This document shows positions 7,301 through 61,392 of a stretch of 64,000 nt of DNA, piece after piece. How positions within the stretch are numbered: position 1 is the first letter of the stretch; every line of letters starts with the position of its first letter. The notes beneath the pieces are model-generated. The model was not told the DNA's origin. It made no database searches and saw nothing but the letters and a program-made list of their open reading frames with translations. The stretch is from the NCBI GenBank assembly GCA_015680685.1, contig MNCI01000811.1, forward strand, positions 112,381 through 176,380. The letters are read 5' to 3'. A program made the position numbers and the translations under genes. Source of the stretch: Gnetum montanum (taxonomy: Eukaryota; Plantae; Gnetophyta).

Positions 7301-7529
7301 ACTCTACTAGGTTTGAATTAGCCAAGGCTTTCTTTTCCTTAGTATCTTTGAGCTTACCTAGGATATCTAATTTTTTGGCTTGTCTAAAGTTTTTTACATC
7401 TTTAAATCTCATTCTAGACATAGCCTTTTCTAATTTGATAGCTTTGTTTAACATTTCTTTCAAATGATTGTCTTTATTAAGCTCTTCACTTTGTAGTTCA
7501 ATGGAACCATTTATTGAAGCTAACATCTA

Positions 7530-8230
7530 GAATTAGTTATATTTTGAAAAGGAAATATTTCTTTTTGAGGCTCTTTCATAGTGGGATGTATGTTATCTTG
7601 AATTAGGTTTAATTATCTTTCTAATTCTATGACTTCACTATAAAGGTTGGCTAAAGTAGTAATATTTGGAGTTCTATGTAATCAAATTGAGATTCTTGCA
7701 TCTATAGCATTTAAGTAAGTATCTTTTAAAACTTTATTACTTGGTAGAAATTGGTTTTGAAGTTAGCCACATATCCTTTGAAATTTAATGTTGAACTCTC
7801 TTACTGATTCTTTATTTTCCTATTTCATTTGAACTAGGACATTATATAGTTAATGTTTCTCAACCTAATTGTCAAATTGACCTATTAATAAAGCTTTCAT
7901 ATTGCCCCAACTAGCAATACTATTATTTGATAAATTTTAATACCAAATTTGAGCTATATTACTAAGGTTACCTATGAAAAATCTGAATGCTTGATCTTGG
8001 TGTTGAATTTTTACATGAACAAGGGCTAGCTAAAATAGGTATAAATATTACTTTGTTAAATAGGCTTTTCTAGGGTTGTACAATTTTGGTAGGTACTTGT
8101 AAGCTACTCTAGGAATATCATGATAAGCATTGAACATCAAAGGTATGGGGAGCTTAAATGGATTAGCATCAGGTAGGTTAGCCATCATTTGTAAACTATG
8201 ATTTCTACTAAATTATCCTATTTCTAACTT
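7530..8230 (-). pseudogene. Gag (capsid) remnant
   Basis: YHDIPRVAYKYLPK..., QHQDQAFRFF..., AQIWY*NLSNNSIASW. Confidence 0.7.
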
Positions 8231-9471: not shown

Positions 9472-10045
9472 TGTAACATCCCCATTCCCAAATGATGTTG
9501 TTGCATAATGAAGATGGTGCTTCTTCATAACAAGTGTTATTGTTATCATAATAAGGCCTAAAAGAGCTTGTTGTAATTGGGACTCAAAAGGGTGCATTAT
9601 AATAATGAACATGTTTCTTCAGGTAACCTTTAGAGGTTTGACCTAAGGCATTTATACTCAGGGTAGAGGTTGTGCTAGCATGGAGTGGTAGAGATAGTAA
9701 AGGCAAGTTATGAGAGCTAGGTGAAGTGGGATAGGAAGTGGACTAGCCATTCCTTTTGGCCAATTGTAGGCCTAACCATGGTGGAAGTGTTGAATTAGCT
9801 CTAAGGGGATAGATGCTAAAGGAAGAAAACCCCAAGGAACACTCTTAGATAATTATCCAAATACTCTATTACATATCAATAAAGCATTCTTTTCTTTCTC
9901 TTTCTGCATGTTCTCTATTATTTTCTTTACACATAATGTTGAATGTTACATATATTGTATGTTTGGTATATTGTCTTCTTAAGCATAATGTCTAATATAA
10001 TGTATACTTGATGTTTACTATGACATTTGGGGACAGGATGTCACA
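9472..10045 (+). repeat. 5' LTR
   Basis: TGTAACATCCCCATTCCCAAATG ... CATTTGGGGACAGGATGTCACA (imperfect terminal inverted repeat), then TAGTATGGAAGC (decayed iMet PBS, 10048-10059). Confidence 0.88.
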
Positions 10046-11394
10046 ACTAGTATGGAAGCAAACCACAAACCAAGGGTCATTTAGAACCATGAAGTCATGA
10101 TAGAGGGAAAGTTATTGATCATCTCCTAATGCATCAGATGTAAGCTAGAAGATATTGTTCCATTAAGTTTATGAACAATGGATCATACATCTACTAAAGA
10201 CATAGATCCCACCAACCAAAAAAATTCTTTCATGGATATCATTAATTGATGAAGATTTGATTACGCCTCATCAAGATTCATTAATTGCAAGAGATGTTGG
10301 TAAGATAGGGATACACTAGTCCAGGTAACTCTTATCCATCTAAATACTATAAATATGATCATTGTTAGGTTTCTTTCAAAAGGTTACTAACCATGATCTA
10401 AATTGATCGTGTTTTGTTGAAACTCATTATCCTAAGTGCTTAACCTTTGTAACTTATCATTATTCATCTCACCTAATATCTATGCATTAGAAAATACAAG
10501 GGGTAAAATCTAAGATCATCCCAGGGTTGGTGCATCTTTTACAACCAAATGCAAGTAATTTAGAAGATGTCAAGTTACCCATATGTCAACCTAGTAATGT
10601 CATTATGGTGGAATAAGCTAGTTGAACCTTTCAAAATATTGAAAAATTCAACTTTTTTTGAACCACAATAGTATGTCCAATGCATAGTACAATCCAAGAT
10701 GATTCCAACAATACCAATTTCATCAAAATCTGACTTACAATTTGGGAGATATGATTTTTCTCGAGTTACGTGCAATTTAAAAATTAAGAAAAAGAAGGAA
10801 TGACAAGTTGTAGGTTCAACTCCAAGTCCCAAATCTTTCAAAAATAATTTAATTAAAATAAGTCCTTTATGAGGGCACCCATGATGCACCACCATCCAGT
10901 CTCCATTACTACTACCACATGTGCTGCCCTCCTGCATGAGTCATTACCTTTACATTTTTCTCACTGTTGCCACCCTTCACTCATGTTGCCACCTCTACAT
11001 GTGCCACTTGCCTCAGATCATTGTTTCCCTTTGTAAGCTCATTTTCCCTCCACATGTAATGCTTGCTACTCCTCTATGTTGTGCTACACCTACTGCTTAC
11101 CACTCGCCTACTTCCATGCCATCACTCCAATTGCTCTAGTGCGCTTCACTTTGCATCATCATCCTTAGCCATTGCCTACCACCTCCAGCCATACTACTTG
11201 CCAAAATTTATATTATTGTTGAAAAACTCACCATATTTCTCATTTCCTATCACACATGTTGGTTTCACTATCACCTGCACTACCATCATCATCACCATTA
11301 ATTACACCACTATTGTTGCCATTGCCTCTACCATTGCTAAGAAATCTATTGTAATTTTTGGTTGCCCATTGGTGATTTGTGGAAACTAATGACA

Positions 11395-11725
11395 TTGTTC
11401 ATAAAGAGCACATTTGATGCTCCATAGGCATTGAATGTGCCACCCATAAAGGACATCTCTAGTGCTTTGTGGGCATCACCCATAAAGAGCACCTCTAGCT
11501 CTCCACGAACACAAATAGTGCTATCCTTAAAGGGCACCTTTGGTGCTCTATGGGCATTGATGGCACTACCCATAAAGTACACCTTTGGGGATCTATAGAC
11601 ACCTATAGCACTATCCATAAAGGGCATCTTCAATGCTTCATAGGCACCAACAACATCATCCATAAAGGGCACCTCTAGTGCTTTTCAAGCATTGATGGTA
11701 TTGCCCATAATGGCCACCTTCGATG
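11395..11725. repeat. 45-bp degenerate tandem array (~7 units); homologue at ~31425-31680
   Basis: Unit ~CCATAAAGGGCACCTYTAGTGCTCTATGGGCATTGATGGCACTAC, with CCATAAA recurring about every 45 bp. Confidence 0.85.
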
Positions 11726-12193
11726 TAATCTACTGTCAAAAAAATTCTCACTATTGATGCCTACATGTTAGTCGGTAAAGGCTACATTGGCCCCTACATG
11801 GACCATGTTGGCTCCCTTTGTGGCATTTTATCACCTCCACACATGTTAATGCCTCCACAATCACCTCCATAACTACCTATGCATTGCACCGATAATGACG
11901 TCAATCTACACCACTAGAGAATTGCCCTACAAAAAAAAACACTACTTTTTCCCCAAACACCAATGCACATGCACCATTTTAAACATTGCTACTGTCATCC
12001 CTACCTACCACATGATGAAAAAATTCTTCGTTATGAACACCAAATTGAAATTTTCTATCAATAGACAAAAAATTTGAGATTCTTGTCAATTGACCAAAAA
12101 TTTAGAATTTAAGTCCTTAAACTATTGGTCTAAATTAAGCACACATAAGAATAAAATTTAAAAATAGAATTTGGGATGTTTGTAGAATATGGG

Positions 12194-12261
12194 ATAAAAA
12201 CTTCATAATTAAGTGTGCTTACTCTAGAGTATAACTAGTATGGGTGACATCTCAGGAAGTC
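12194..12261 (+). promoter_or_regulatory. 5S rRNA-derived internal control region (A box-IE-C box)
   Basis: Gap-free manual alignment to the plant 5S consensus (recalled from memory), 50/68 identical: ..AATTAAGTGTGCTT..AGAGTA..ACTAGTATGGGTGAC..GGAAGTC, followed by a T-run. Confidence 0.85.
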
Positions 12262-13017
12262 TCATTTTTCATGCCAAAGGTTCTAAAATTTAGGAGGCAT
12301 AACTTTTGATTTTGGAAGCCTTTGTTACTAAACGAAGAGTTTTTTTCTATAGATTTCAAGCTTTTGGACATAATGGTAAAGTTAGATCTACCCCATGAAA
12401 TCTGAAAAATTAATTTTTACCACTTGCCTAACATAGTACTTGAACACCCTTAAAAGTTTGATTTTAGCATAACTTTAGCATATTATGTTCATTTTTAACA
12501 TATGAATAGTTATTTCCAATATTTTTCACCCTTCTAAACTTAATGATGAGGTCATATTTATCATCACAGTACTTGATAATTTGATGATATATGAAATTGT
12601 ACCTAAAAGTCTACAACATAAGGATAACTAATCATGCCTCGTTTGGACTAACAAATTTAACCTTTTGGGCCTTAAGATTTAGTGCCTAACCTTTGCAGGT
12701 AATCTTAAGATCACTATGGCATGTCACTAGTTACACTGCTAGAGTCAGTGTCCTAAGATAGGTAAAAGGATCGTTAAGAATTAGATAATGTCATTAAAAA
12801 TTACTAAAATTAGATAATGTATCTAAATATTATCAAAATTAGTTTGAGAATCAATTGATGAAATAGAAAATTCTTCAACAATCAAGAAGATGTATATCAA
12901 TTTTTTTTTGCAATTAAATCATATGATAGATCAACATGGAGAGTCATAATCTCATTTGCACAAGGTGTATGATACCCGTAAAGAGTAATGGTCTAGCATA
13001 AAATCCAAGAATAAGAA

Positions 13018-14130
13018 TGAAAGTTGTAACATAAAATGTGCTTGCAAGATTCCTATCGAGTGAGAAACAACATCTATTATGTTCACCATGGGCCTTGGAT
13101 TGAGACAAATATCAATATCCACACATTTTAGTAGAGTTACAAGATTTTGATGCTGATGTTTTATGCCTACAAGAATTCTTACCATGGGAATTTCTATACT
13201 AATTCCAACTAAACTTGGAAAAGATGGGATATAGAGGTATTTACAAGAAAAAAGGTTCTTGTGGAAGTTCTTCTTTTGAGCCATATAGATTAGCCTATTG
13301 TAGAAAACACAACATGAATGGTTGTGCAATATTTTATAAGGAAATCAAGTTTGAATTAATACAAAGATTTGAATGGAGTTTAGAAAATATCATTTTTGAA
13401 ATTTCAGAACTTCAAATGATGGAAATGAAAGAATGGTTAAGATTTTGGAAAAAATCACATAGCCTTGGTAGTAATTCTAAAAATCCAATTATCATGGAGA
13501 TGTGTATGTGTAGTTAACACACATTTGATTGCCAAATCAACATGTTTAAATGTTAGACTATGAAAACAAGCATACTTGATTAAGAAAATAGGAGAAAGTT
13601 TGAAGAATAAGTCATTCCTACACTATATTGATCTAGTGCCAATTATCCTTTATGGAAAATTTAATGCAAAATTTGGAAGTAGTGTTTATCAATTTTTAAA
13701 ATATGGATGTGCAAAGGAATCCTTAGAAGATGAACTTGATTTGAAGAAGATGTTTCCATCAATTAAACATGAAATTCCATTGGCTAGTGCATATTTTGCT
13801 TACTTTGAATCTTCAATAGATAAATTAGATTCTAGAATTTATGAACAGATGATGTTGATGGATAATACTCATCAAGAACCATAGTTTACCAATTACTCTA
13901 CTATGACTAATGAGAATGGATCAACAACATTCTTCATTGAGACCCTAGATTATATTTGGTACAATGTCTGATTCTTCCAAGTTACCAAGTTATTAGAGTT
14001 AATTTCTAAAGAAGAAGTGGAGAAAAATCAAGATCAAGCCCTTCAACCTTGAACAAGATCATTCGATCATATGCCACTTATGGTAGATTTATAATTACTC
14101 CCATTAGTTCATAAGGTTGATCAAGATTAG
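13018..14130 (+). pseudogene. CCR4: Intronless CCR4-type deadenylase (EEP domain) pseudogene
   Basis: Ordered motifs MKVVT*NVLA, YCSPWALD*, DADVLCLQE, GCAIFYK, CVVNTHL, PIILYGKFN (GDFN), HEIPLASAY, EP*FTNY, TLDYIWY, SFDHMPL (SDH). Stops and frameshifts present; no introns seen. Confidence 0.9.
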
Positions 14131-14555
14131 AAAGTATCTCACTTTTACTTTTATTGATAAATCTTATTATTTCTTCATTTTTTAATTTATATTTTAATTA
14201 TATAATTAAAATATCTAAGTTAATGAAAGTTGGAAATAAAGGATTTGCCTTGCCTTCACTTGGATAACTAGATACAAGTTGCACTTTGTGTGACCTTGCT
14301 TAGGATTGGTGATTGGTGGTTGGTAGATCTTTAATTCACCTCTTGTCATTATCTTAAGAAAATGAAGTAAGTATTATGAAAGTAATATTTAACTTCCCGT
14401 ATATTTTTCTCACATATATCTTGTTTGAAAAATGAGCAAGAAACAACTTCAAGTTCAAAGGAGAAATTAATTTATTAAAGCATAGGAGCATAATAGAAGT
14501 ATTAGACCTAGAAAAAGATAGTGAGCATGGACTTGTTTGAGGATGAACAAAACCT

Positions 14556-15143
14556 AAGGGGGATAGATTGTAATGTTCCCATTCTTAAATGATGTTGTTG
14601 CATAACAAAGATGGTTCCTCTTCATAACAAGTGTTATTATTATCATAACAAGACTTGAAAGGATGTGTTATAATTGGGACATGAAAAGATGCATTGTTAT
14701 AACAAACATGTTTCTTGAGGTGACCTTTGTAGGTTTTACCTAAGGCCTTTATACCTAGGCTTAAAGGTTGTACCAACATGAAGTGAAGGAGCTAGTAAAG
14801 GCAAGTCACTAGAGCCAGTTGGAGCAGGATAGAAAGTCAGCTAGCCATCTCTTCTGGTTGTTTGTAGGCTTAATTGTGGTGGCAGTGCTAGATTACCTCT
14901 ATGGGGATAGATGCCAAAGGAAGAAAATCCCAAGGAACACTCTCAAAGCATGATCCAAATACTCTATTTCATATTAATAAAGCATTATTTTCTTTTTCTT
15001 TCTACACTTTCTTTATTATTTTCTTTATGCATGATGTTGAATGTTACATATATTGGATGTTTGATGTATTATCTTCTTACACATAACGTCTAATATAACG
15101 TATATTTGATGTTTTCCATGACATTTGGGAATGGGATGTCATA
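14556..15143 (+). repeat. PPT (14556-14567) and 3' LTR (14569-15143)
   Basis: AAGGGGGATAGA followed by TGTAATGTTCCCATTC ... GGGAATGGGATGTCATA; colinear with 9472-10045. Confidence 0.88.
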
Positions 15144-16959
15144 GTATCTATTTCATCTAGTTGATGAACCTTTCTTATCTTATTAGTTGAATATATACTT
15201 CTTGAAGCTCAAGGAAAATCACATCTCTCTTTAAATATTCTAGTCATTCCCCTTAAATGTTTTAAATTGATAAACTTCTAGAAGCTAACTTTTAAAGAAA
15301 AAGCTTTTTTGTTCTTATAATCATGCCTCAAGGGGCTTGACCACATTTATCTCCTAACTTTTAAAGTTGCCAAGTAAGGAACTACAAATCTAGGAGACTT
15401 GAAAGACTTTCCCTCAAAACCTACCATAAGAATCTAAGTATAATGGACATGTGAAAAGACAGCATCATGATATTTTGCTTTTATCTCATTAATTATTTGT
15501 TGATTAACTCTTGGAGAAAAAACTCTTAAAATTAACTTTAGTAAATGGGAATAAATACAATTCATTAAGAATTTGAAGGCTTATACATCAAAATAGCTTC
15601 TCTAATAAAAAAAAAAATCTTTTGGATGATCCCTTCTCACTGATGCATAATTGACAACAATTGGGGCTATTCCCTAAGAATGAACTAAGACTTAACTAGG
15701 TCCCTTGTTTTTAAATTTCTACTAAGCTATGCCATAAAGCATCATTCGTATACTATATGGGAAAGAGATGCTTCTTATTTTAGAGGGCTACCCAAGCCCA
15801 AACATTATAATTAGTAACTAATTTAATTTCATAGTTTGAACAAAAGTTTAATTTTGCAATAAAAATTCTATGTACGAACCTAAGCTTAAAATCTTTTAAA
15901 ATGATATTCTTGTATCCCCAAGCGTTTGATAGATTGGCAAAAGGAAGCTTAATGGTTTTTCTAATTTTAAGGTGATTCTAGAATTTTTTGCTTAGTACTT
16001 TCTCATTGAACTATTAAGCTTCTATTTTCATAATTCCTAGTTCTATAATCCCATAGAGCTTGTATGTATTTATGGTACTGATGATGAAGTAGCATTCTGT
16101 GTTCCTTCTAAATTGAATCTTATCCTTCTCATATACTATCTTAGATACCAAGTTATGTAGAACATCTCTAATGATATTTACTCTAGGCCTAAAACCAAGT
16201 TGTGAAGTCGTGTCTTCTCATATATCTTCTGCTAATCCTCCATTGATTCCACAGAATAAAGACCTAATTTTTCTACTATGTCATGATCTTTATGAAACTT
16301 GAACAAATATGCTTCCTATACTTTCAGTTTTAGGTGTACTCAGTAATCCATTGGTGAAGCTAATAAATGTTTAGATTAAATTATAGAAGATAATCTAATA
16401 ATTCGAAGGTATCAACATCTTGAAATTTTTAAGGTACTTCTTCTTTCTCTTTATGAGAAATTTTAGCTCATTTTTTTAGATATTTTGACGGGACTTCAAG
16501 GATGCTTCTTTGCACTTCAATGGTAGCTCTATTTCAATTTTTATCCCTAACTATTAATGGTTGCATATTTTGAAAGCTTCTTTGTTATTATGTATGAGTA
16601 CTTAGAGGTTCATCCTTTAATTTGCTCACTTTTGGATAGGCTATTCAAATATTTTTTTGATACATGTTATGAGCTTTGATTTTGTTGAGCTACTTTGCTA
16701 ATCTTCATTAAAAGCTCTATGTTCAACACTTTATTTTATTCTCATCAACCTAGCTCCTTTTTTCACATTTATAGAGCTTAATTTATATGAATATTTTGAT
16801 TATATGGAAAAGACAATGTTTATTCTACCTATACTAACATGGTAAAGGTTTTTCTTAGCTAATAGAATTTCTTTGCAGAATTATTTTAGATTCTAAAATT
16901 CTCTTCCTTCTAATTTAAGTTGACATGTGGAATAGCTTGTAACTTTCTTTTATAAATCC

Positions 16960-18930
16960 TTCAGTGTTGATGTTAGCTTGTAGAACCTCTTTTAATTTTG
17001 CTTGTAGAGTTTATTTTCAATTCTACATATTCATTCTATAAAAGAGCTATCATGGAAGAATGGTCATAGAACCTTTATGTGGAACTAGATTTTGGTTCTG
17101 TGAGTTGTGTCACATTTTTTAGCTTTGTAGTATGCTAAACAAGATTAAAATATAATGCACATATGCATAAATTAATCTTGTAATATTTAGTGGATCCAAG
17201 ATTAGCTTCATTTATATTAACATGGCTTGTAGAACCACTTTGGCTTTTCTTTGTTTTTGTTCTACAAATCTACATTATATGGAACCTGATGTGGTAAAGC
17301 TTTTTCAAGACCCATCTTTAGAATTGACTCTCTTGATTTGATGAATCAATTAAACTTTCAAGGTTGACATAATTTTAGAACTAATTTTGATCTTGCTTGT
17401 AGAGCTAAGTTTAGGTTCTATAGATTCATTTTGTAAGGGAGCTAATGTGGTAGAACCAATTATACACCTACTTGTAGAACCAAATTTTGGCTTTACAAGC
17501 GATGTTTCTCTTCATATTTTGTCTTTATATAATGACATGGTTCATAGAACTATTTTAGCTTTCCTCTGTAGAACTCATTTTTAGATCTAGGAATCCTTAG
17601 TATAAAATTAGCTAACATGGAAGTAAGGACTGAGTATATTTTTAAAGCTTCTGAATCATCTTTTAGAAATAGTTTAGCTATTCATTCGTAGAATCATTTC
17701 ATAGAATTATTTTTTTGGTTCTACAAACTTGCACTTCATAAATGTTAATTTGGCAAAAGCTTCTCTAAACCTTTCTTTCAGGATCATTTTTAGTTAACTT
17801 TTCAGGATTTGATGTGAGAAAACCAATTTGGAAACTTTTTGTTTGTGAAACTAAATTTTGGTTCTAAGAACCGTGTAATTCAATTTTTCTCTTTATGAAA
17901 TGTGACATCACTTCAAATATTCACTTAGTATAGGTAACAATGAGATTACTTATAAGGATAGATTTTGATTCTACATACAAGCTCATTTTTAGGCTCCATG
18001 ATGATGTGGCTTGTAGAATCATTTTTTCTTTTCTTTGTAGAAATAAATTTTGGTTCTACAACCCATGCTAAAATAGCTAACTTGGCAAGGTGGAAGTGAG
18101 TGTTTAGTATCTCTAAAGATATTTTGATATTGTAGAACCATTTTGTAGAAATGGTTTTTAGTTCTATGAATTTAGGCTACATAATAAGATGACCTGGCAA
18201 AGCCAAAAGTGCACTTCTTATAGAATCATTTTTCAGTTCTACAAATCTCTCTCTCTTAAGAGAGTTGACGTGGTGAAACCACTTCTGCATTTGTTTGTAG
18301 AACCAAACTTGGTTCTACAAACAATGCTTGCTTTCAAACTCTCCACTTAAATAATGATGTGGCACATAGAATAATTTTATCTCTTTTTCATAGAATTAGA
18401 TTTTGATTCTACAAATTCACCTTACAAAATAGCTTACATGAAAGAATGTAGAAATGAGTGTTTAATATTCACTAAGAACTTTTTTCTTCTATGAACTCAT
18501 CCATTATGGAGACATAACATGATTAAGGAATCACTATATCATTTGGTTTTATAGAGCTAACTTTCATTTAAGGGCCAATTATGATAGAAACATTGGTTCC
18601 TTAAGTCTAGCTTCTCTTTTTTAGCCTACGTGCCACATGGGATTTATTCATGAAACTAATTTTAAAATTTTTGTAAATATTCATACTGTAATCATGCAAA
18701 GCTAATTTTGATTCATGGCACATAGAGTTATCTTAAATACCCTCCTAGAATTAGCTAATAGAATCATTTTGTAGAATTACATTTTTGTTCTATGAGCCTC
18801 CTCTACAAAATGAAGTTGTAACTACACATATTAACAATTTTATCTCATAATTAATAGAACTTGTCATGGTTTGTAAAATTATTTTGAAAATCTTTCATAG
18901 AATTAATTTTTTCTATTCTATGAGCCCACT
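16960..18930. repeat. Degenerate array of TAGAACC..GGTTCTA hairpin motifs, probably the 5' UTR of the minus-strand Gypsy
   Basis: Many GTAGAAYY / RRTTCTAC pairs; perfect 15-bp arms at 18291-18324. Confidence 0.65.
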
Positions 18931-20309
18931 TAACCTAACTTAAATGATGTGGAAGAATTAAATGGGCTTCAAAGTATACCCTTTTTCTAAATTAATCAAT
19001 CTCATTTTCTTTTGGGTTTAATTTTTTGTTCTAATGCTAACCTTGCTTTGAGATGAAATCAATTTTTTAACTCTGTGAATTTATTTTTGATAATTCTAAC
19101 TTTGAAAGAGCATTTTCTTGGACCAGGTTATACTTGTATAAGCTCTATCTTGATAGAAAATTTTACTATTTCATGCATTATTAATTATAATTCAAAATTC
19201 TAGTTATTCAAATTAACTTAAACTTAATGAGGTTTCATGATCAATAGATCAAAACCTTCTAGGTTGATTATTTACCTTTAAAAGCTTCCATTGTTAAAAA
19301 GAAAAGTTGATTGAAATGAAATTAATATTCTTAGTATTTCTATATAATATTTCCTATAAAACTTTACTTTCACATGGTATTTATTTTCTAGATACAAATA
19401 TGGCATGATAAATCTTAGCTCAACCATACCATGTGAGTATATCAATCTTTAATTTAAAAGCCATGGAACATCGTGCAAAGAAGTAAGTCCAATAATTCAA
19501 GTCTTGTACTATTTCATGAAAATAACTATTATTACAATAGTAGTAAGTAAATTTAACTTATAAAATAAGAACAAAATAATGAAATGGAGAAAATATCCAT
19601 TTTATTAAAATATTCTCAATATGTAGAGAAATACATAAAACATAAGGATCCAAAGTCAACCCACAACTCTCCCAAGGATCTTAGAGACAACACATGTTTC
19701 CTCTTAATTCTCAATTATTCATAATGGGCCTAAAGCTTAAGACAAGATACTTATAAGATATTCTGTCAACCTCCCTCATGTGCTCTCCCTTTCCTCTCAT
19801 TCAAACTCTCTTACATAAGCTCTCTTCTTTCACAAGCTCTCATGAAACCTCCTATATATCTCTTCTCTCACTCTTACCCAAATTTATGTCTTAGAATCTT
19901 ATTTATAGTTTCTTGGTGTGACATTTTATCTTTATCTAATTTACAATTGAATTTGATATCCATTGAAATCCATACAAAATATCTTTGAGTTGGAAGAGAC
20001 ATCTTGAATATTGAGGAGACATCTTGCAAACATGTGAGATGTCTTATCTTAGATGGACACATATTGGATGTAGTTGAGATGTCTTGCATGAGACTGAGAC
20101 ATCTCACTTACCAAGGTCAAAAATAAATATTCTTATTTTGAGGTCTAGAATTTATGGACATCTTCAAATAACTCATAACAATAGGCTCAAAACATCCCCA
20201 AACATGCCAAAACATTCTTGAATCATCATCAACAAGGTCAACACAAGAAGACAAACTCAAATAAAACTTAAATACACATAAAATACATTGATGATTGCAT
20301 AAGGGCTAG

Positions 20310-22930
20310 GTGATGTTCTCATTTTCTATACCCTTGTAAATTTAAATTGCCACTTCACTTAGTGATTTTCACATTATGAACCTAGGGAAATATGATGTTT
20401 TCTTGGCTATGGATTGGTTGTCTCACTATTATGGTAGTTTGGGTTGTTGTCACAAGGCACTTTCATTGGTGATAGATGATGATGTTCAAATGATGGTGCA
20501 TACTTAATCATGCAAGGTCAAGTTGAATCTTGTATCTTCAATATCTCTTCACCATTTTTTGTGGAAGGATCATTCTTGTTTCACTAATTTAGTAAGCATA
20601 CATTCTTTGTTACTTAAGATTCACTAGATTTTCATTGCCTAAGATTTTCATAATGTGTTTTTTATTAATTCTGAAATACTTGGTTTGCCTCAAGGTGTAA
20701 TATTGAGTTTAATATTTCTCTCAAAACTATTCCTAAGCCTATCTCCAATGTTTCATATAGGATGTTTCCTATTGAGTTACCAAAACTAAAGATTCAACTT
20801 CATGAGTTGCTTGACAAGGATCTAATTTATTCAAGTGTGTCTCCTTTGGGTGCTCTTATTCTCTTTGTAAAAATGAAGAATGGTAATGTGCCATTATGCA
20901 TTGATTATTGATATTTGAATGAAGTGATAGTGAAGAATAAGTATCCTTTATGAGGCATTGATGATTTGTTTAAGTAGTTCAGGAAAGCTTGGGGGTTCTC
21001 AAAGGTAGATATAAAGTTTAGATATCTCTAGGTCTACATTAGAGAGGAAGATGTTCTCAAGACAATCTTTTAGATATGCTATGGATATTATAAGTCCTTG
21101 ATTTTACCATTTGGACTCACTAATGCTCCTATAGTATTTATGCACCTAATGAATAGTGTCATGAGATCATACTAGGACTAGTTTGTTATCATTTCCATTG
21201 ATGATATTTTGATGTACTCTTTATCCAAGGAGTTGCATGAATAATATTTGAGGATCATTTTATAGATACCTTGAGAACCTTAATTTTTTGTCCAATCTTC
21301 TCAATGTTCATTTTGATGCTAAGAGGTTCAATTTTTAGGGCATGTTATTTGAAATGTTGATATACTGCAGGATCCTTCTAAGATTTTAGTTATTCAAGAT
21401 TGGCCTATTCCCAAAAATGTTGAGGAGGTTGGTAGTTTTCTTAGGATGGTAGGTTATTATAAGAAATTTGTCAGGAAATTCTTTCACATTGCTTTACCGC
21501 TCATGAAGCTATTGCAAAATGATGTTGATTTCTTATGGAACCTACATTATAAGGCTACCTTTGATGAACTTAAAGCTAGACTGATCTCAACTTCTATTTT
21601 GATTTTAGCCATCCCAAGTAAACCATTCATTATTTATACTAATACATTAGGAGAGGGTTATGAGTATATTCTTATGTAAGAATACACCTTAGTAGGCTTT
21701 AGTAGGTTCAACTTAGTAGGCTTCAAATGCATTCAAGTAGCAATAATATGTATCAAATGCTAAAAATGTTTAACTAGTAGCAAGGCATGAAGAAGTAGAT
21801 TTGAGAAGTTTTGGCTAGATATTTGATATATCAATAGGTTAAACTTGAGCACTAATTACCAGGTGGCTACTTGTACTATCACACTATTGTAGAGTGAAAG
21901 TGAAAGGTGATTGGTATTAGTTTCATTACTAGTTTGCCTCACACTAGGAGTGGAAGGAATGATATCCTTATTTTGTTGATCTATTGATGAAGTTAGCCCA
22001 TTTCCTAGATATGAAAACTTTAGCTAGTCCAGAGAATGTTGCATAGTTATTCATGTTTAAAATCATATAGTTGTTTGACATTTCTTGCAAGATTATCCAA
22101 GATCACAATGCTATATTTACTTCTTAATTTTAGTGTGCATTCATGGATAGCCTAGGCATTAGGATAAATTTGAGCTTAGCTTATCATCTGTAGATTAATA
22201 GATAGGTTGAGAGAGTCAACTAGGTGTTTGAGAACATGCTTTGGTCTTATGCTTTGTAATTTTTAGATAGTTGGAATAGTCTATTATCATTGGCAGAGTT
22301 TACCTCTAACAAAAACTATTAGGCAAGTCTAAAGAGAGCACTATATAAGGTTTTATATGGGAGACCTTGCAAGATTTCCTTATGTTGGAATATGAATGAG
22401 AATAGGTAGTGTATCAATTTAGAAATTTTGATGAGGATAATCAAGTAGATTAGGGAGCTACATGAGAAGCTTAAAGTAGCTTATGATAACTAAGTGAGCT
22501 ACATGAGAAGACCTCTCAAGTTTACAATTAGTGATAAGATGTTTGTGCATATCTCTTCATATAAGGAGTTGATGTGTTTTATCAAAAAAGTATATTTCAC
22601 CTTGTTATATTAGGTTGTTTAATGTTCTTCAGTGTATAGGATAGGTCGCATATCGTGTTGGTTTACCTCCATAGCTTTCAAACATGCATGATGTATTTTA
22701 TGTCTTCATGCTATGGAAGTATGTACTTGATAGTAATTATGTTTTAGATATGACTAAGGTATAGCTTCAAGCTAATGTCTCATATGTGAAGCATCCTATT
22801 AGAATTGTGGATCACAATTGTGTAGTAGGATAGTATCCATAGTAAATATTTTTTGAAGCCATCATGATTTTTAAGAGACTACTTGGGAGCTTAAAACTGA
22901 TTTATGCTCTTCCTACCCTAAGCTCTTATA
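20310..22930 (+). pseudogene. pol remnant (protease, RT, partial RH, integrase, chromodomain)
   Basis: [72 protein letters not shown]...ETTWE. Confidence 0.88.
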
Positions 22931-22968
22931 AGAGAAAGATTCTTACTAGAAGGGAAAGAGGGGGAGGA

Positions 22969-25900
22969 TATAACACCCCATATTTTTATAATCCTTGGTA
23001 CATATGATCCTTTTTCAAGATTATGTTACTTGTGCTAGATGTATCTCATGCATGCTACTAATTTGATGTATTTTATGCTTGGACATTCAATATTGATCAA
23101 GTTTGAGATGCACATGTGAATTAATGTTATTATGTATATTTTGGGTATTTGTATATATATGTATATATATTTTCATTCATAAAATGTGTACTAATCCTAT
23201 TGTTGAGTATGACAGGCTTTCATGAGAGTTGACTAGGAGCATGACATGGTTGATGATCTATGGGTTTCCTGATATTTCTTAGAGAATATTTTCTATCCTT
23301 GTTTGTTATGTTATGTTTCCAACTACTTTATTTACATTTAATTTAATTAGTTTTATTTTTATTTTATGATATTTATTAGGATATTTTGAGATAGTGTTTT
23401 AATAGCATACACTTTATTAATTATTTTTGGTGTTTGTGGATAGTACATGATAGTACAGGAAGTTACCTATGTGATGAGAGAGATTAATAGAAGTATTCAT
23501 TTAGTTTAGCTCTCATTTTGAGTAACTATATGATTTTTCTCTTTTTATGATTTTTGGTAATCTTCCATCAAAACTTCCATGGCTCTTTCATTACAATCAC
23601 CTTGATGATTGGTGATTGAACCTAGTGGATTTTGGATTAGTAGTAATTTTTATTGGATCTTTGCTTTGTTTCTTTTTTCTCTTATTAATTTATTCATGCA
23701 TATTTGGTGGTGAGAAATCTTGGCTCCCTTTTCATATAAATTGAAAAAATTGTGTACATTTGTGGGATGGGTTTGGTGATATTAAATTCTGCATTATTAT
23801 GTTGTTTGTGAGCTAATTGGTATTATTCTAAATATTTTGGAACATTGATCCTAAAGATTTTTATGTGTGTAATTCATGATTTTTTTTATTGTTGTTTCCT
23901 TCAATTTTAGGTGTGGGTTTTGTCAAAATCAATAGCAACATTATCCTAGGTTTTTCTATTTGTAGGTTCAATATCCTTTGTAATTAAATAATTAGAGTTG
24001 TTGTAATTCTTATTTTGTATTATCTTTGGTTTGGAGAGGTGAATGTAACTTGGTCTCATTTCATGGATAGTTTGGAATCTTAAGATTTTCATTTCTTATT
24101 GATATCTTACTTTGAGCTATTTCTCCTTTATAGATGATGAGCATTTCTTAATTAATTATTGCTATTCCTCTACTTTTATAGTGATATTAATTGAATCCTT
24201 TTCTTGTTGAATGTGTTATTTTCTTATTTGTGTATATAATTCTCTTCATTATGAGATTTTTATTCTCTCTTGATGTCATTTTTATCCCAAAATAACACTA
24301 CCATTAGATATTTTTTTTGTTTCCCATTTGTTTTTATTTCTAGGTTGTTGGAATCCCTGTCTATAGTTTTCTTAACTTTTCCCATTGATTTTACTCCTTT
24401 CTAGATGATTTTTACTCTTTTCTAGCTCATCCTAGATATATTTTGTCTTAGAGATATATCTCCCCTACAAATCAAGTATTCCAAGAAGACAACTCCACTC
24501 TACACAAGACATTTTCTTTCTAGAGTAGACATCTCCCATAGCCTATAGATGTCTCCTATTTAGTGTATATGTCCCCCCAAACCTTCAAATATCTTGTGAG
24601 AGTATTCATTACATCTTGTTAGAGTCATCATGACATTTCTTTAGAGTCTTCATGATATCTCTTTTGAGTCTTTATGACATCTCCTTAAAGTCATTTTGAC
24701 ATTGTTTTAGAGTCTTAGTAATATCTCATTAGAGTCTTTGTGACATCTATTAGTAGATGTTTCCATTATGTGGATGTTTACCTTGTAGGCCCATCACTTC
24801 AACAAACTTATTTTCATAATTTTGGTATTCCATATGAGTCAGGTGTTTGATTTTCTTGACTTCCAGTCTTTTTAAGTCTTGTTAGAATCTAATCTTTGTA
24901 TGAACTATTTTATTCTATTATGGGATTTGTGAAGATGTTTGTGCATTTGACCCTCACAACTGTGCATCAATATGAATTTCATTGTAGGTCCTATTCTATT
25001 CGAGGGTGATTCCATGGCTTATTAGTCTTCTTTTATTTGATTCCTAAAGAATGTTAGAGGTGAGTCTTGGAAACGTTTCTAACACTAGTATATGTATGAT
25101 GTGATTGGATGAGTTTTGATAGAAATATATATTTATAAGACTAATATTAAATCCATTCACATGGTAAATTTTGTATTTGATTTGGAATTTGGTTATTGGA
25201 ATTGGATGAGTATACATGTTAATAATTGATACACATATGACACTAAGTATGGTGTGTACTAGCCTCCTTGTTTACAATGATAGTTGGAGTTGGCAAATCA
25301 TTATTAGTTATATTTGATGATTGCATGTTTTGCTATATATTTTTATGCTTGTTTAGATGGTCTTAAGCTAAAATGTTTTGTAGAATAACCATGCTTCATC
25401 TAACTTCCATGAGATTTTTCCATTCTTTAATTGTAGATGATGCCAAGGTTCATCACTTAGTTTATATTGATATTAATTTTTATTTATATGTTGATCACAT
25501 TGGGTGGATATTGGAGATCTTAGATGGTTTGCTAATTCATTTCTAGTATGATTTATGATGTTATATTCTCAAATTTGAGCTTTAGATATTTATGTATTAT
25601 ACATTTCAACATGTTTTAGACATTACTTATCTTTTTCTAGCTTTTGGATTTATGGATTTTGCATGGGCTAGACCTTTGATATTATGTTAATAATATATTA
25701 ATGAAGATTTAAATTTGTAGTTCATTAGTTCCCATCTCCTTTTCATAATTTTAGGTAAATAAATTTCATTATTTTCTATCTAGTTAGATTGAGCTTCTAA
25801 CATATATGTTTAACATAATTTTATATTTACGTATTCTTTTTCTTCCACTATCAAGTTTCATCTCTTTTTATGGGTCATGGCTTCATGTTAGGTTCCTTGT

Positions 25901-26017
25901 GCTTTCTTTTATTAAATAGTTTATTTTGTCTTATTCCTTATTATGGCCAATCATTTGCTAGAGGTTTTATCGAACATAATGCTCTTGAACCTATAGTTTA
26001 GAAAGGAGGCTGTTACA
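22969..26017 (+). repeat. 3' LTR (~3.05 kb) preceded by a PPT (22949-22967); contains a ~23-bp GACATCTC..AGAGTC tandem at ~24600-24750
   Basis: GAAGGGAAAGAGGGGGAGGA|TATAACACCCC ... GGAGGCTGTTACA. Confidence 0.7.
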
Positions 26018-26489
26018 ATGCTATTACTCATTTAAATGTAAATTATTTTGTTCATCATTCAAGATGATTTTTTTATTATATGAATTATGATACATCAAAA
26101 ATTTAATATTTTCTTGCTTAGATAGTTGAACATTTTCCTTTGGTAAATGAATAGTCATCAACTTCAGTGTTGGCCTTAAAAATCTTGAAGATACTCTATT
26201 GATCCCTTTGGGTGATATCTAGTAAACTATTTTAGTGTTCTGAAAGGAAAAAATTGATGCTTCTTCAATGCTACTCTTTTAATGATTAAATTTCTATTGA
26301 TATTTGAATTTTTCATTTATTGTAAATTTTGAATGGATTATTTATATCATTTACTAATGATGTTCAATGCATGATTACCTCTAGATTTTCCTAAATATTT
26401 AATGTGTTCTAGAAATCTTAACATTCAATTTTATGTTTATATGTAATTACATCATAAGTACTTTAGTATATAGTAGGATGGTATATAGT

Positions 26490-27528
26490 ATTGTTTATAG
26501 TTTTTTGTAATATGTATTGAGTTAGTTACATTTAATCAAAATATTAAATAATAATAATTAATTGTTGTGTCTATTTATTCCTTGGATGCGACTATTCTAT
26601 TATGGCTATAAGTAATGATCCTAGTTTAATAATTATGTAAAATAATAATAATATGTAATATGAAGAATAACACAATGTACTTGGTTATCTTTTTTTTTTC
26701 TTTTTTTTTTATTAGTTCATGTTCTTGTATTTGACATGTATAACACCATGGATTTAGTCTATTTATACAGTGCATGTTTATATTATTCTTGATAGTCACA
26801 AACTATTTTTAATGTCTTAGACTTGGAGATCTAAATATCAAAAAACTTTAGCATGGTATTGAAGTAGGTTTTTGATGAATTTTATGTTACCACTATGAAG
26901 TAGTCATGGTGTGATGGTAGTTAGGCATATTTAATGTGATCATAAGTATAAAAATTAACTATAGAATTTCAATTTTTACATTTTGAGTCTACTGCAAAAA
27001 CTATAAAGAGAGAGTGTGTGTACAACATAGTAATGGTTGTTATTTCTTAAAATATTGCATTCTAGCTTGAATTTCTTTTTGTTCTTAGCTTGTAAGTTTT
27101 ATTTCTTAAATTTATAATCATAATCTCATAGTTTCTAGTAAAATATGAAAAGAATTCAACAATTCACAATTTTGTTATTTTAAAAAGTTAAATTGATTTT
27201 TCCCTAGTGTTTTGAATTATTTTTAGGATAATAGAGTCATGTTTAATGAAGTGAAATCAAAGTTCATAATGAATTTTATTATTAAAATTTCAAATTTAAA
27301 AGGACCTAAATTTTCTTTGGTTTTAGTATAATTATTTGACAAAATGGCTTGCATTTTTAGAGGTCAAGGACAAGGACATGGATCTTTAAAGAGGAAGTTC
27401 ACCCCATTTTCAACATCATTAGAACATACTTAGACATAATCATCATCATGAAGTCACCATAGTAATCCTCATAGTAAGGATTTAAGATAAACAATGAACA
27501 TTAAAAACGTGAAATTACACTGTATAGT
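26490..27528 (+). mobile_element. Possible Ty1/Copia remnant (LTR end, PBS, gag), cut by the 27529 LTR
   Basis: ...TTAGCA|TGGTATTGAAG (PBS-like, 26854). FRGQGQGHG (decayed RGRGRG) precedes a truncated Cys motif. Confidence 0.4.
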
Positions 27529-28099
27529 TGTAACATCCCATCCATGGTTAAGGGTGAAAATGTATTATATAAATGTAATCAACCTTCAAATAAAAGAGTG
27601 CCTCATTATGAAGAGTTATGATTATTCATGTATCCCTCAAGAATGGGTTTTAACTATGCTATTTAAGGCTGGATTTAGAGGTCATGTTAAGCATGGAGTT
27701 GCAAAGCTTGGAAAGGCAAGTGATGAGCATCAAGTGAAGTAAGACAAGAAGGAACTAATCAACCCTTTAGTTGGATAGCCTAACCATGTTGGTAGTGCCA
27801 AATTGCCTCTAAGGCTTAAGTGACATGGAAAGATAACCCAAAGGGTGTTACAGTAATCTTTCTTATTAATGAAATATTTCTCCATTTTTCCTTCCTATTG
27901 CATGTACCAATTATTCATTTACCAATAATTCATTGATCAGAGTATTTTATGATATTTCCATTATGCTACTTATGAATGTTATGAATTAAGAAATGAATGA
28001 TCATGTTTTTATGAAATTCGGGAATGAGATGTTACATTTGGTATTAGAGAAAACCATGATTTATGAGCCAAATTGGAAGAAAATATTATATTATTATTG

Positions 28100-30490
28100 T
28101 TAGTATAAGAAACAAAAGTACATCCAAGTAGAATACATGTAAAAGAAGAAGTAGAACACAAGAATAGGAAAGATATGGAATAAGGAAGCACAATAGTGAT
28201 CATTTGTTTGATGAAATGAGTCAAGGATATTTGAGAATATCTTCAATTGTGTTTCCCATTCTTCATTGATGGCATCTATTTTGCTAAGCACTAGCTTGTA
28301 TCCCACCAACCCATCACAAAATTTCTTGATGTACTTAGTGGCACTCTTTGCTACAACCACTGATTCCTTGCTTATCTTAAGTTGGGCATCTAGTATCTCC
28401 ATCTGAATTGATTGATCATGCATGTCTTTTTTCCATTATTTCTATTTCCTCTACACAAAACTAGATTCAAATTATGAGTATGAACAAAAACATCTAATAG
28501 AAAGAAGAAAAAGAAAAGAGAAAAGAACTACTCGCCTAAAGACAATTGTTATCAATTTGAAGAAACCATTCACGTGTCTATAGATGGCAAGCCAAACATG
28601 TGGCACTCTTCAATTCTCTTAACAGTTACTCTAGATCTTTGGCAACTTCCTAAGAATCCTCAAGAATTGGATAGAAAGATAATGGAGCACTAGCATGTAC
28701 TAATTCATAGTCTTTCTTGAAGTTGCATGATTGGGATGCTTGTATGTGGTAGATATCCTCACAAATAGAGGCAGGTTTGTTTTTGGTAATTTGTTGACAA
28801 AGATGCTAAAGAAGCATGAGTTCTTCTTTGGCATCCACCACTATCTATCCCATTGAATAGGGGGAACCCAAGATAGACAAAGAAGGAATTATTGGAACAA
28901 ATGCAAGAGCTAGTGTCGACACCACCTATGGTAAGGAATCCCTTACAAAAATTACATGAATAGATCACACATGAAATGATCTAGATGGAGGAATGAGAGT
29001 TTGTTTAAAACTTGCACTTACAGTATCATCTCTCTCCATTTCTTAGATAAAGTACCTTTGACCTAGAGACATCTATAACACAAAAATGTCAACATCATAC
29101 AAGAAGAGAAAATGGGAAGTATTCAAAGCTTAAAATAATTAAAGCTTAACTTTGGTTCCTTTCCCTTATCCTATCTTGTATTTTGTTTCTGAGCTTGTTG
29201 TTGGGTTTGTTATTTTGTTTTTTGTATTATAACTAATAGGCTACCAAAACCTTGCCTAGTACATTGCCTTTGTAAAAAGAAATTTATTAGAAAAGAAAAT
29301 ATACATGTAAAATAATAAAATAGGATATTATTTACATATATCTATATATACCTTGGAGCTAGTAAGTTCAATTTTTTCTTGGTACAAAACCCATCTAAAG
29401 GATGAACCACCTTGAATGGATGAAGTACGTTGAACATCCTCTATTTATGCATCTTCAGCTTGTGGACCTTGAACCGGCTGATTCTATAACCCAAATTGCA
29501 TTGTCGATACATAAAAAGACATAAGGAATAATAAGAATTATATATATATATATGCTTTGTTGCTTTCCTCTTAATTTTTGGCTTGTTGCAAAACCATTTG
29601 ACCCCTCCTTGCACCCTCAATCTAACTTTTTATAACTCTATCCTCTTCAAGAAATTTAGGACATAAACTAGGATTGTAATGACTAAAACGTTTGGTGGAA
29701 GGGTTGCAACTTAAGATTAAACACATGATCCAAGGTATGAAACATATGACATAAGATAGTAGCTACTCCATTCATGGCATTGTACAAGGCAGAAAAACAA
29801 GATAATAACCAATCATAAACTCTACCATTTCTAGTATCATGAAGTATAAAAGTGGAATGGGTGCTAACATAAGATTGGTGTTGATGCCATAAGACCTTAC
29901 TATGGATGAATTGACACAAATCATAGTGAATTTCATTAATGAAATCTTCACAAAGAAATTGGCTTTTGCAAACAAAAAAATCAAGAACATAATCAAATAA
30001 TTCATTTTGACAAAATAATTTAAACCTAGGAGATAAACCAGAGGGAATTAAAGGATCCTCATCATATCAAAAACCAAAAAATGTTCAAGTTTTAGCAAGA
30101 TTAATTTTTAGTGCTCCAAAAAGTAATTGTGATGTAGAACTTCCATTTTTATTATATTGATTACACCATTCAACTATTAAGCTTTTGCAATATTTTGCCT
30201 TGAAAATAAGGAAGACAAGTAATTCAGATAATCATGAAGACATAAGATACTGGAACTCCTCCTTCTTAAGTAAAATACACACATGATTAGAAGAAAAAAT
30301 TACATTATTTTCATGCAAAAAAATGGATACCGATTTGCTACTACTTGAAGGAGCTAAAGGAGCTTGGGGTTGGGAAGGACCTAGAGAAGTAGCTTGACAC
30401 TTTGGAGTTATGATGTTAATTAGAATTCTTGATATGTAGGAATTTTGCAATCTTTGAAAATTTTTTCTTCAATCCTCCATTGATATTGTG
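28100..30490 (-). pseudogene. Decayed antisense multi-exon gene of unknown function (coiled-coil C-terminal part)
   Basis: Minus-strand ORF pieces 28100-28423 and 29772-30005, separated by T-rich intron-like tracts; donor-like sites near 29352, 29020 and 28530; TATA-like site near 30520. Confidence 0.45.
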
Positions 30491-32252
30491 TTATGATGGA
30501 AAAAGAATTCTTTCTTCCATATTTATAAAAGAACAATAAGGACCTTAGTGGTAGAAAAGAGGAAGTGCCAATTTAAGTTAATTAATGTCAAGCTAATGCT
30601 TAATTTTCATGATTTTTTTATTGATAGGTTAATCAAAATGGTGCTATCTCTAGTTCAACATGTAGTGTTTTCTAAGATGATTCCAACAGCACCAATTTCA
30701 TTGAAATTCAAGTTATGATTTGGGAGATATGGTGTTTCTTGGGTTACATGTAGTTTTAAAATTACAAAAGTGCTTTTTAAAATTTAAAATTTATTTTTTA
30801 AAATTTTCTTTTAAAAAATTAAGGGAAAAGTGGAAGGTTATGGGTTGAACCCTAAACCCTAATATTATTTATCATTTATTTAAAAAAATTTGAGAAAAAA
30901 GTGAGAGGTCGCAGGTTCGAACCTGAACCCTAATATTATTGAATATTTTTAAAAAATCAAAGGGTGTGTAGGCCCAACAAGGGCTATGATAATCCTATGA
31001 GGGCTATGCTAATCTTGTAGGGGCCACATTGACCCTACAAGGGCTATGTTGATCCTACAAGGGCCACATTGATCCTAAAAGGATTGTGCAGGCCCTATAG
31101 ACAAGGTAGTGTAGCCCTGTGTGGGGCCATGTTAGGCTTAAGGATCAATGTAGCCTTCATTTCAAAGGCCACCATCCTCTAACACTCTACTCCATCATCA
31201 TACTTTAATGTCTATTATTCAGCCTGCTGCTCTGCTCTACCTACCACTCCACCCACCATAACCACTGCTCTATCCCACCATGACAACTTGTTGCCACTCC
31301 TCCTAGCCATGCATCATGCATGACTAATTCCGCCTACCATCACATGTCCTACTGCACCATGCTCCACTACTACCCAACACTCCACCACTATCCATTTCCA
31401 ACACCATTGCTACTATTTGATGGCACCATTTATAATGGCCCATTCCAGTGCTCTATAGGCACCAATGGCATCATCCATAATGGCTCATTCTAGTGCTTTG
31501 TAGACACCAACAATGTTATCTATAATGGATTATTTTGGCTCTCTGTGGACATTGATGATATCATCCATAATGATCCATTCTAATGCTTCATCAATGCCAA
31601 TGATACCATTCATAATGGCTCATTCCAATGCCCCATGGGCACTAATAGTGCTATCGATAATGATCCATTTTAGTGTAGTCTAGCATTGAAAACCCCAAAA
31701 ATCACATGTAATGCTACCTTTAGAGTGGGCCATGCTAGCTCTTATGAGGACCACACAAACTCTAGAGTGGGCTACGTAGATTTCTTTTAAGGCCACATAG
31801 ACCCCTTTGAGGGCAACACAATCCATGTGAAGGCTATGTGCCCTACATAGGCCCCCGTTCCCACAAGCCATGCTACACTAGCCTAAAGCTACCCCACAAC
31901 CAGAAAGAACATTATCGTGCAAAGGCCTCCATTGACATTGCCATACATCAATCCTCCCCCATAGTAACTATCTCCAACGCATGTTTGTTTCCCTCCTTCC
32001 TAGATACTAATCTACTTCTAACATTGCCTACTTTACCCTAGAAACTATTGCCAGTGTGCCACTACAACCATTACTACCCACCATCTCTACCTGCCATGTA
32101 ACGGAAAAATTATCTGTCATCAAATGAAAAATTCAAAATTCCTATCAACTGATAGATAATTCAAAGTTCCCATCATTGAAACATTAAATTAAATTAATAA
32201 TGCATGGATATAATTTTCAAAAATAAAATTTCATGCCTTGCTAGAAATGAGG

Positions 32253-32320
32253 ATAAAAATTCCATAATTAAGCATGCTCATTCTAGAGTAGAACTAGGAT
32301 GGATGACCTCTTAGGAAGTT
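32253..32320 (+). promoter_or_regulatory. Second 5S rRNA-derived internal control region
   Basis: Gap-free manual alignment to the 5S consensus, 51/68 identical, including AGAGTAG.ACTAGGATGG.TGACCTC..GGAAGT. Confidence 0.85.
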
Positions 32321-32669
32321 TTGAAAATCATGTTGGTTTCTACAAACTTAAAACATCCATAACTTTTGAATTTCAAGTCCATTTTAAACCAAATAAAAAA
32401 TGATTCCAATAGAAGTAAACCTATTGAATGCAATGGAATGGTCAAATTTATCTTTCGAACAATAGAAAATTACCTTTTAATCCATTACTTAAAGTTCTAA
32501 AAGAAATTAGGATTCAGTGGTCAAGTATATATTCATGATAGTTTCAACTTCTTATATAATCAATTAACTATCTTGAGATCCATAAAAATGGTCATAGAGG
32601 CTAAGGATTGCCAACATGCCTAATTTCCTCAACTTATTGATGTCTAGAAACCAAAGAGTACATTGGAGA

Positions 32670-61373: not shown

Positions 61374-61392
61374 TAAACTTGATGTACGTAAA

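Follow-up and report, generated by a model that had tools for sequence, protein, structure and literature searches.

A probable Cassandra-type 5S control-region module in the internal leaders of two diverged LTR retroelements of Gnetum montanum

In a 64,000-nucleotide stretch of Gnetum montanum DNA (contig MNCI01000811.1, positions 112,381 to 176,380; hereinafter the window), two related long terminal repeat (LTR) retroelements, elements A and B, each carry in the leader of their internal domain a segment of the internal control region of the 5S ribosomal RNA (rRNA) gene. We interpret these segments as a Cassandra-type 5S module lodged in the leader that belongs to an LTR family of high copy number, whose attachment (att) sites are of the Del/Tekay type, a reading to which we assign a probability of roughly 0.55. 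Cassandra elements are described, in the work of Kalendar et al. (2008) as cited in PMC7215508, as plant non-autonomous LTR retrotransposons of the TRIM (terminal-repeat retrotransposon in miniature) kind with a 5S-derived domain. A module of this type situated in an internal leader instead of the LTRs would constitute a new structural variant.

5S-derived cores and the elements that carry them

The window is plant-like DNA with a GC content of 35%, dense in old LTR elements. The two cores, sites A and B (Table 1), align with each other without gaps at 56/68 identities, and neither strand of the window contains a further copy. To assess their relationship to cellular 5S genes we used an nhmmer profile of 20 plant 5S genes (Rfam scores 87-114 bits), drawn from genes that had been pulled from metagenome contigs by a box C pattern and confirmed in Rfam at 64-114 bits. 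Searched against the whole window, this profile recovered site B (32258-32319, profile positions 42-103, E 2.3e-9) and site A (12198-12265, profile positions 41-109, E 3.3e-8) as the only significant matches, the next one lying at E 0.26. The published Cassandra query (box A RGTTAAGYRHGY, N18, box C RRRATRGGTRACY, with up to 3 mismatches allowed; PMC7215508) likewise matches the window at just 12207-12249 (3 mismatches) and 32266-32308 (2 mismatches), against a chance expectation of 0.01, and two matches were seen in 0/100 shuffles. In both copies the spacer separating box A from box C is exactly 18 nt.

The Infernal check with RF00001 that had been proposed for these sites fails if taken literally. 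At the gathering threshold of 38 bits the model finds 0 matches in the whole window, and in the E-value mode of Rfam it yields no 5S match on 2.5-kb stretches; a 171-nt Rfam search returns site B at 13.9 bits (E 1.9, 32213-32329), well short of the cut-off, and gives no match for site A. The plant-specific sequence profile being highly significant, we ascribe the silence of the Rfam model to its sensitivity. Relative to the cellular 5S rRNA gene, the two sites are ~70% identical over positions 38-108, with the box C region almost intact; in contrast to that gene, their 5' 40 nt and 3' end are absent or unrecognisable, and they form no tandem array. By sequence comparison, A and B are true homologs of the 5S internal control region, and the homology is limited to that region.

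A third, weak stretch resembling the 5S box C lies on the minus strand at 38888-38916 (nhmmer E 0.26). It has no significant homology in its flanks and is not counted here. A box A-like AACTCAAAATTAAGT occurs on the same strand at 39048-39063, ~130 nt before it, neither of the two being significant alone. On the minus strand a gypsy RNase H and integrase (34470-35891) follow ~3 kb downstream of the stretch, in the sense of that element.

Element A spans 5,672 bp, with 575-bp LTRs of the TG...CA form and a 4.5-kb internal domain holding a nuclease pseudogene; the loose ends of hundreds of contigs bear out 9472 and 15143 as family boundaries. The same loose ends show that in other family copies the LTR is followed by TTGGTATTAAAGAAAACCATGA and that the family-majority primer site is TGGTATTAAAGA, a 9/12 match to TGGTATCAGAGC. 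Element B is represented in the window by only its 5' LTR and primer-binding site, and its 3' LTR was not found in the window. From ~34.2 kb onward there is an opposite-strand gypsy-type pol (integrase 34470-35267, RNase H 35649-35891) that belongs to another element. The original prediction of a family primed by the initiator methionine tRNA (initiator-Met) is in keeping with the initiator-Met-like sites of element B (10/12) and of the family majority, the site of element A itself having decayed.

The distance from the 5' LTR inward to the core is 2.1 kb in A and 4.2 kb in B, and nhmmer detects no 5S similarity at E<=10 in the LTRs at 9472-10046, 14569-15143 and 27529-28036; the module is thus internal and outside the LTRs, as had been proposed. 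The leaders of the two elements are colinear: 10693-10791 corresponds to 30671-30769 and 11942-12419 to 32028-32479, and upstream of the core tandem repeats occupy colinear positions (11267-11732 with 31336-31689). Around the core we saw no poly(A), target-site duplication or terminal repeat. As the flanks are homologous and colinear on both sides, the module was inherited and not inserted twice. Sequence evidence therefore supports a 5S module that passed, in an internal position and not in the LTR, to two diverged members of one LTR family, and the original picture of a gap-free piece with A box, intermediate element and C box at the same place in two diverged elements is sustained by the profile E values and the colinear blocks alike. 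The tandem repeats of the leaders have themselves diverged (11366-11725 in A, 31417-31689 in B).

The degree of conservation of the core differs from that of its surroundings. In the A-B alignment the core is 82% identical with 0 gaps, as against 58% identity and 30 gap columns over ~435 flank columns (Fisher p = 5e-5, or 4e-6 with gaps as mismatches); immediately adjoining it, identity is 59-61% upstream and 52-57% downstream. Core and flanks differ little in GC content (34% and 26-32%, respectively), and transitions account for 9/12 core differences. The LTRs of element A, identical at insertion, are now 81% identical. If element B is of similar age to A, decay since insertion would suffice to account for the full 18% by which the cores differ; the cores would then have been almost identical when both inserted, at a time when the leaders were already ~30% apart. 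Further, A and B share 12 bases that are derived relative to the 5S consensus, which indicates that the conservation of the core was inherited within the lineage and not refreshed from 5S genes. At 11/12 sites of difference between A and B one copy keeps the 5S base, and therefore their ancestor had a canonical box C and spacing, with one change in box A. For this pair of sequences, the pattern fits purifying selection on the module in active elements.

Table 1. Features of elements A and B in the window
Feature	Coordinates	Strand	Remarks
5S-derived core, element A	12194-12261	+	5S positions ~38-105; nhmmer E 3.3e-8
Box A-like motif, element A: AATTAAGTGTGC, 11/12 to RGTTAAGYRHGY	12207-12218	+	Cassandra query, PMC7215508
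Box C-like motif, element A: 11/13 to RRRATRGGTRACY	12237-12249	+	18 nt past box A
T5 run past element A core	12265-12269	+	Possible RNA polymerase III (Pol III) terminator; unaligned with the B run
5S-derived core, element B	32253-32320	+	nhmmer E 2.3e-9; RF00001 13.9 bits
Box A-like motif, element B: AATTAAGCATGC, 11/12	32266-32277	+	Cassandra query
Box C-like motif, element B: AGGATGGATGACC, 12/13	32296-32308	+	18 nt past box A
T4 run, end of element B core: GGAAGTTTTG, like L040 Cassandra cores	32319-32322	+	
Leader block, element A, homologous to 32028-32479 of B	11942-12419	+	Pairwise alignment
Leader block, element B, homologous to element A	32028-32479	+	Pairwise alignment
5' LTR, element A	9472-10046	+	Start TGTAACATCCC, end GGATGTCACA
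3' LTR, element A	14569-15143	+	81% identical to 5' LTR; end GGGATGTCATA
Polypurine tract, element A: AAGGGGGATAGAT	14556-14568	+	Directly before 3' LTR
5' LTR, element B: TGTAACATCCC...GAGATGTTACA	27529-28036	+	64% identical to A LTR
Primer-binding site, element B: TGGTATTAGAGA	28039-28050	+	10/12 to initiator-Met site TGGTATCAGAGC
Frame-broken CCR4/Angel-like nuclease pseudogene, element A cargo	13030-13970	+	Start ~770 nt downstream of core

Relationship to Cassandra and to other retroelements

All Cassandras possess a core of ~70 bp with 'neat borders' (PMC10853983), and those of pear and sugarcane have an 11-bp LTR terminal repeat (PMC4079214, PMC12486564), the LTR terminal inverted repeat being TGTAACATCCC...GGGATGTGACA (PMC4079214). 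As a Cassandra reference for the comparison of cores we used a 1.4-kb plant metagenome contig (L040:1-1386) with five Cassandra-type 5S cores in both orientations; it carries a full LTR end GGGACATTACA, a primer site TGGCATCAGAGCC, a polypurine tract and an LTR start, and its 5S core is located inside the LTR. The borders of the module match, lying at 5S profile positions 34/36-103/107 in this contig and 41/42-103/109 in A and B. Six of the 12 derived bases shared by A and B also occur in a Cassandra copy of the reference contig, among them transversions at 5S positions 39 and 66 that are present in 0/20 5S genes. The core of element B ends in GGAAGTTTT, as do Cassandra cores.

The likeness extends beyond the core. 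The LTR start TGTAACATCCC is found exactly at 9472 and 27529, the LTRs end in GATGT[C/T]ACA, the AAGGGGG tract agrees with Cassandra, and the primer site resembles that of Cassandra in type (PMC12486564). Thus, A and B have in common with Cassandra a ~70-nt 5S control-region module made up of box A, an 18-nt spacer and box C with a T-run after it, an 11-bp LTR terminus (TGTAACATCCC...GGGATGTnACA), an initiator-Met-like primer site, the AAGGGGG tract and a non-autonomous constitution. However, in Cassandra the 5S domain sits in the middle of both LTRs, whereas in A and B it is single and in the leader, the LTRs being devoid of 5S similarity. Cassandras are also shorter than 1 kb, with LTRs of 200-400 bp and a short non-coding interior; element A, at 5.7 kb and with 575-bp LTRs, is much larger and, unlike Cassandra, bears a captured CCR4/Angel-like pseudogene. 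A and B accordingly fall outside Cassandra on its defining features, with a module outside the LTRs and elements that are not miniature. The module itself, judged on its sequence, is likely the same as that of Cassandra.

The original prediction had left the choice between an independent 5S capture and a relative of Cassandra. The borders, the 18-nt spacer, the 6/12 derived bases and the 11-bp LTR terminus make the link to Cassandra the likelier of the two, although the tree of the 71-nt cores cannot decide the matter: by maximum likelihood it recovers an A+B clade (95/89) and a clade of the Cassandra copies (99/97), and is unresolved above A+B.

A lone 5S-like core was also observed at L002:3886-3971 in a 12-kb plant-like metagenome contig; L036 and L082 represent this locus too, and its neighbourhood holds no further copy. 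Like A and B, the core has the CTAGAG and GTTTT states, and the tree places it as their weak sister (71/41).

With regard to the mobilising machinery, the Del/Tekay chromoviruses of the Ty3/gypsy group have a conserved U3 att site, TGTAACACCC (PMC4029996). The LTR start of A and B is one base off this site, which points to an integrase of the Del/Tekay lineage. Del/Tekay elements have gag-pol with a chromodomain integrase, none of which was found in the window as A's or B's own, and in the literature searched no 5S module is described for them. Other retroelements have similarly taken up the internal Pol III promoter of a small-RNA gene. The TRIMp3 elements Ajax and Helenus have such a promoter module in the LTR (PMC10886601), and the 5S-headed short interspersed elements (SINEs; SINE3) resemble A and B in the same respect. 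In the latter, however, the 5S segment forms the 5' head of a non-LTR element with a tail derived from a long interspersed element (LINE), while the module of A and B is internal to an LTR element.

Coding capacity, copy number and transcripts

The original prediction described the family as coding, with a sense open reading frame (ORF), CCR4 or gag, downstream of each core. In element A a nuclease-like frame at ~13030-13970 is broken by stops and frameshifts, and the best matches to it, Angel homolog 2 (E 0.59) and Pfam Exo_endo_phos (E 0.017), are weak. No protein relatives of the CCR4-like ORF were found. The window contains no sense-strand gag or pol of either A or B, and no Pfam gag was found downstream of site B. 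Hence, of the proposed ORFs the frame in A is consistent with CCR4, but as a pseudogene, the gag in B was not detected, and coding capacity is not seen in either copy. We conclude that element A is non-autonomous and carries a decayed CCR4/Angel-like pseudogene, that element B is truncated or interrupted, and that both copies in the window are old, dead insertions.

To gauge the abundance of the family, contigs from DNA runs of two species were mapped on element A at 80% likeness, single-copy contigs having a depth of 6-7. On the LTR the summed word depth amounts to 16,000-50,000, and over 10758-12115 to 5-190; it jumps from 54 before the core to 2,600 in the core bin, is 6,000-8,000 over 12310-13085, and reaches 18,000-41,000 over the CCR4-like cargo in the two species. 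Unique leader contigs from the runs of the two species stop at 12231 and 12235, within the core. The jump in depth together with these contig ends indicates that hundreds of copies share the core and the part downstream of it, and not the part upstream. Thousands of copies share the LTR and the CCR4-like cargo. At 80% likeness, the 1.4 kb ahead of the core is found in the element A copy alone. This leaves two accounts, a front leader that is hypervariable across the family or a recombinant origin of element A with the junction in the core.

Downstream of the core of element A we also noted a local duplication (12297-12390 and 12467-12560, 66% identical). Contigs of another species skip 12323-12490, suggesting that some copies lack it. 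In the metagenome a family-specific 26-mer pattern had no match, and a generic box C pattern retrieved plant 5S arrays and one Cassandra contig, with no family member.

In the RNA run X20 (library type 'other'), the core bin is covered at a mean depth of 2.8 on one strand and 6.6 on the other, with no reads in the seven bins (1.4 kb) upstream of the core and few downstream. At 12237, 25/25 of these reads have G where the element A copy has A, and most fit only partly, which indicates that they stem from other copies. Far fewer core reads are present in the oligo-dT run X23. We regard the X20 pile-up only as a lead for a short, perhaps non-polyadenylated RNA that is not assignable to a polymerase. 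RNA reads of both the oligo-dT and the 'other' library types also fit the pseudogene, though only in short parts, with sharp loose ends at 13572, 13620, 13673 and 13711 that look as if exons of an expressed cellular relative had been matched.

Several further features of the window were recorded. Positions 1-561 hold another A-family LTR, the third, which the edge of the window truncates. Homology continues for ~45 nt past the end of this LTR into the primer-site region and then stops, and therefore the leader of this neighbouring element is different or truncated. A pair of 1,392-bp direct repeats (2977-4368 and 5396-6787), 99.5% identical and 2,419 bp apart, resembles a young LTR pair round an internal region of ~1 kb, in contrast to the 81% identity of the LTRs of element A. 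A tandem array with a 38-bp unit occupies two blocks at 61352-62189, its units being 60-89% identical to one another.

Alternative explanations, proposed mechanism and significance

For the block around the core, an additional internal LTR, or a Cassandra LTR nested there with a primer-binding site after it, was considered and set aside as unsupported. Local alignments with the family LTRs gave z 2.7, 0.7, -0.6 and 1.9; the post-core stretch, compared with an 'LTR end plus primer site', did not outscore shuffles, and no terminal-repeat match is present near the core. A 5S-headed SINE would bring a 5S head, a LINE-derived or A-rich tail and a duplication of its own; the core is embedded in a colinear leader, and neither tail nor duplication is visible.

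It is possible, though we think it less than probable, that the module is a neutral hitch-hiker without any role, namely a Cassandra solo LTR or fragment, or a piece of a 5S pseudogene, that came to be nested in the ancestral leader. The identity of the cores would then reflect recent template-switch recombination or gene conversion among subfamilies, not selection. This explanation is favoured by the mosaic nature of element A in word depth, with unique contigs that break within the core, by the frequency of inter-element recombination in Cassandra (PMC4079214), by a predicted fold that is not significant and by both copies being dead; the possible recombinant junction in the core is the main reason for retaining it. 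It has to contend with the island-like character of the core, outside which identity falls back at once, such that an exchange of exactly the 68 nt would be needed, and with a surrounding block in which neither homology to an LTR nor a Cassandra terminal repeat nor a primer-binding site is detectable. Nor does it sit well with a common ancestor in which the box spacing and box C were intact, as judged from the 5S base kept by one copy at nearly all sites of difference.

We consider it improbable that the family captured its module independently, through read-through, template switching or the like, from a 5S gene or pseudogene, with the likeness to Cassandra arising by convergence on the only constrained part of 5S. 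Such an origin would accord with a tree in which A+B and the Cassandra copies are not joined and with the possibility, left open in PMC10853983, of multiple origins of the 70-bp module; moreover, the derived bases in common include several transitions in CG/CHG contexts, which recur easily. Yet any part of the 120-nt gene could have been taken, and the borders are the same as in Cassandra. The transversions at positions 39 and 66 are absent from the 5S genes, and the 11-bp LTR terminus and the polypurine tract are those of Cassandra too, with a primer site of similar type (PMC4079214, PMC12486564). Scarcely credible are two separate insertions of a mobile 5S cassette, be it a 5S-headed SINE or a Cassandra fragment, into related elements, or a chance resemblance. 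The flanks of A and B are homologous and colinear on both sides over ~480 nt, and again further upstream, and the hallmarks of an inserted cassette (poly(A), target-site duplication, terminal repeat) are missing around the core; the E values of 1e-8 to 1e-9, together with the shuffles, rule out chance.

Several observations tell against a Cassandra-type module maintained in the family leader. A 5S-like fold is not better than shuffles (z -1.5 for B and -0.7 for A), though the predicted fold of site B retains a 10-bp terminal stem and a helix IV-like hairpin. At the second position of box A both copies have A, where the published consensus fixes G. The case for selection is drawn from one pairwise comparison in which the age of B is assumed to be like that of A, and element A resembles a recombinant with a breakpoint at the core, where a recent exchange could mimic conservation. 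In the core tree the link of A+B to the Cassandra copies or to the lone metagenome core is weak, and the shared derived bases lie partly at freely varying positions where convergence is possible. The X20 reads point to no particular polymerase, and their strand depends on library chemistry. Lastly, the T-runs that had been noted past the cores are indeed present, as T5 in A and T4 in B, but they do not align with each other or keep a conserved position, and chance would be enough to produce them, such runs being commonplace at ~30% GC.

On the favoured reading of a Cassandra-type module in the leader, the following course of events can be envisaged. An ancestral piece of ~68 nt of plant 5S, with box A, intermediate element and box C, would have come to occupy the part of the leader that separates the primer-binding site from the slot for cargo or gag. 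The host lineage would have had the LTR termini, initiator-Met-like primer site and polypurine tract seen in the Cassandra TRIMs and the Del/Tekay chromoviruses, and the module would most likely be that of the Cassandra LTR, moved by recombination or nesting between elements sharing this machinery. During transposition it would have stayed near-invariant under purifying selection in active elements as the leader diverged by ~30%. TFIIIA may bind the DNA, with TFIIIC and TFIIIB following. The outcome might be a Pol III transcript of ~115-120 nt that ends at the T-run past box C, as reported for Cassandra, or else a chromatin mark bound by Pol III factors. The roles put forward in the original prediction (promoter, insulator or targeting signal) are conjectural, the hints of function being the better preservation of the core and the small X20 pile-up from other copies. 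After insertion, both copies in the window would have decayed neutrally. Downstream of the cores of A and B there are 25 and 18 runs of T>=4, respectively, and because of these the module cannot drive a full-length RNA; it could at most yield a short Pol III RNA and not the genomic RNA.

A more far-reaching version, which we hold to be doubtful, is that the module is a selected, working part of a chromovirus-type leader and of its abundant CCR4-cargo derivative, where it would bind TFIIIA and other Pol III factors. The family would in that case be the long-missing larger relative of Cassandra, having given the module to it or received it from it, and likely its mobilising partner. Were this true, the module would be shown to move as a unit between LTR and internal positions.

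Among LTR elements that have taken over a Pol III promoter, Cassandra is the textbook example, and the origin of its module, by single or repeated uptake, and the identity of its autonomous partner are open questions (PMC10853983, PMC4079214). The window presents what is likely the Cassandra module, with its borders and spacing, in the leader of large elements whose integration and priming signals are like those of Cassandra. Even as a neutral passenger, it would illustrate cleanly how a retroelement of high copy number spreads 5S relics, a point of importance for 5S annotation and for fluorescence in situ hybridization (FISH). If the arrangement holds genome-wide, this would be a lineage in which to test the mobility of the module, the machinery that moves Cassandra, and whether Pol III factors may serve an LTR element from an internal position.

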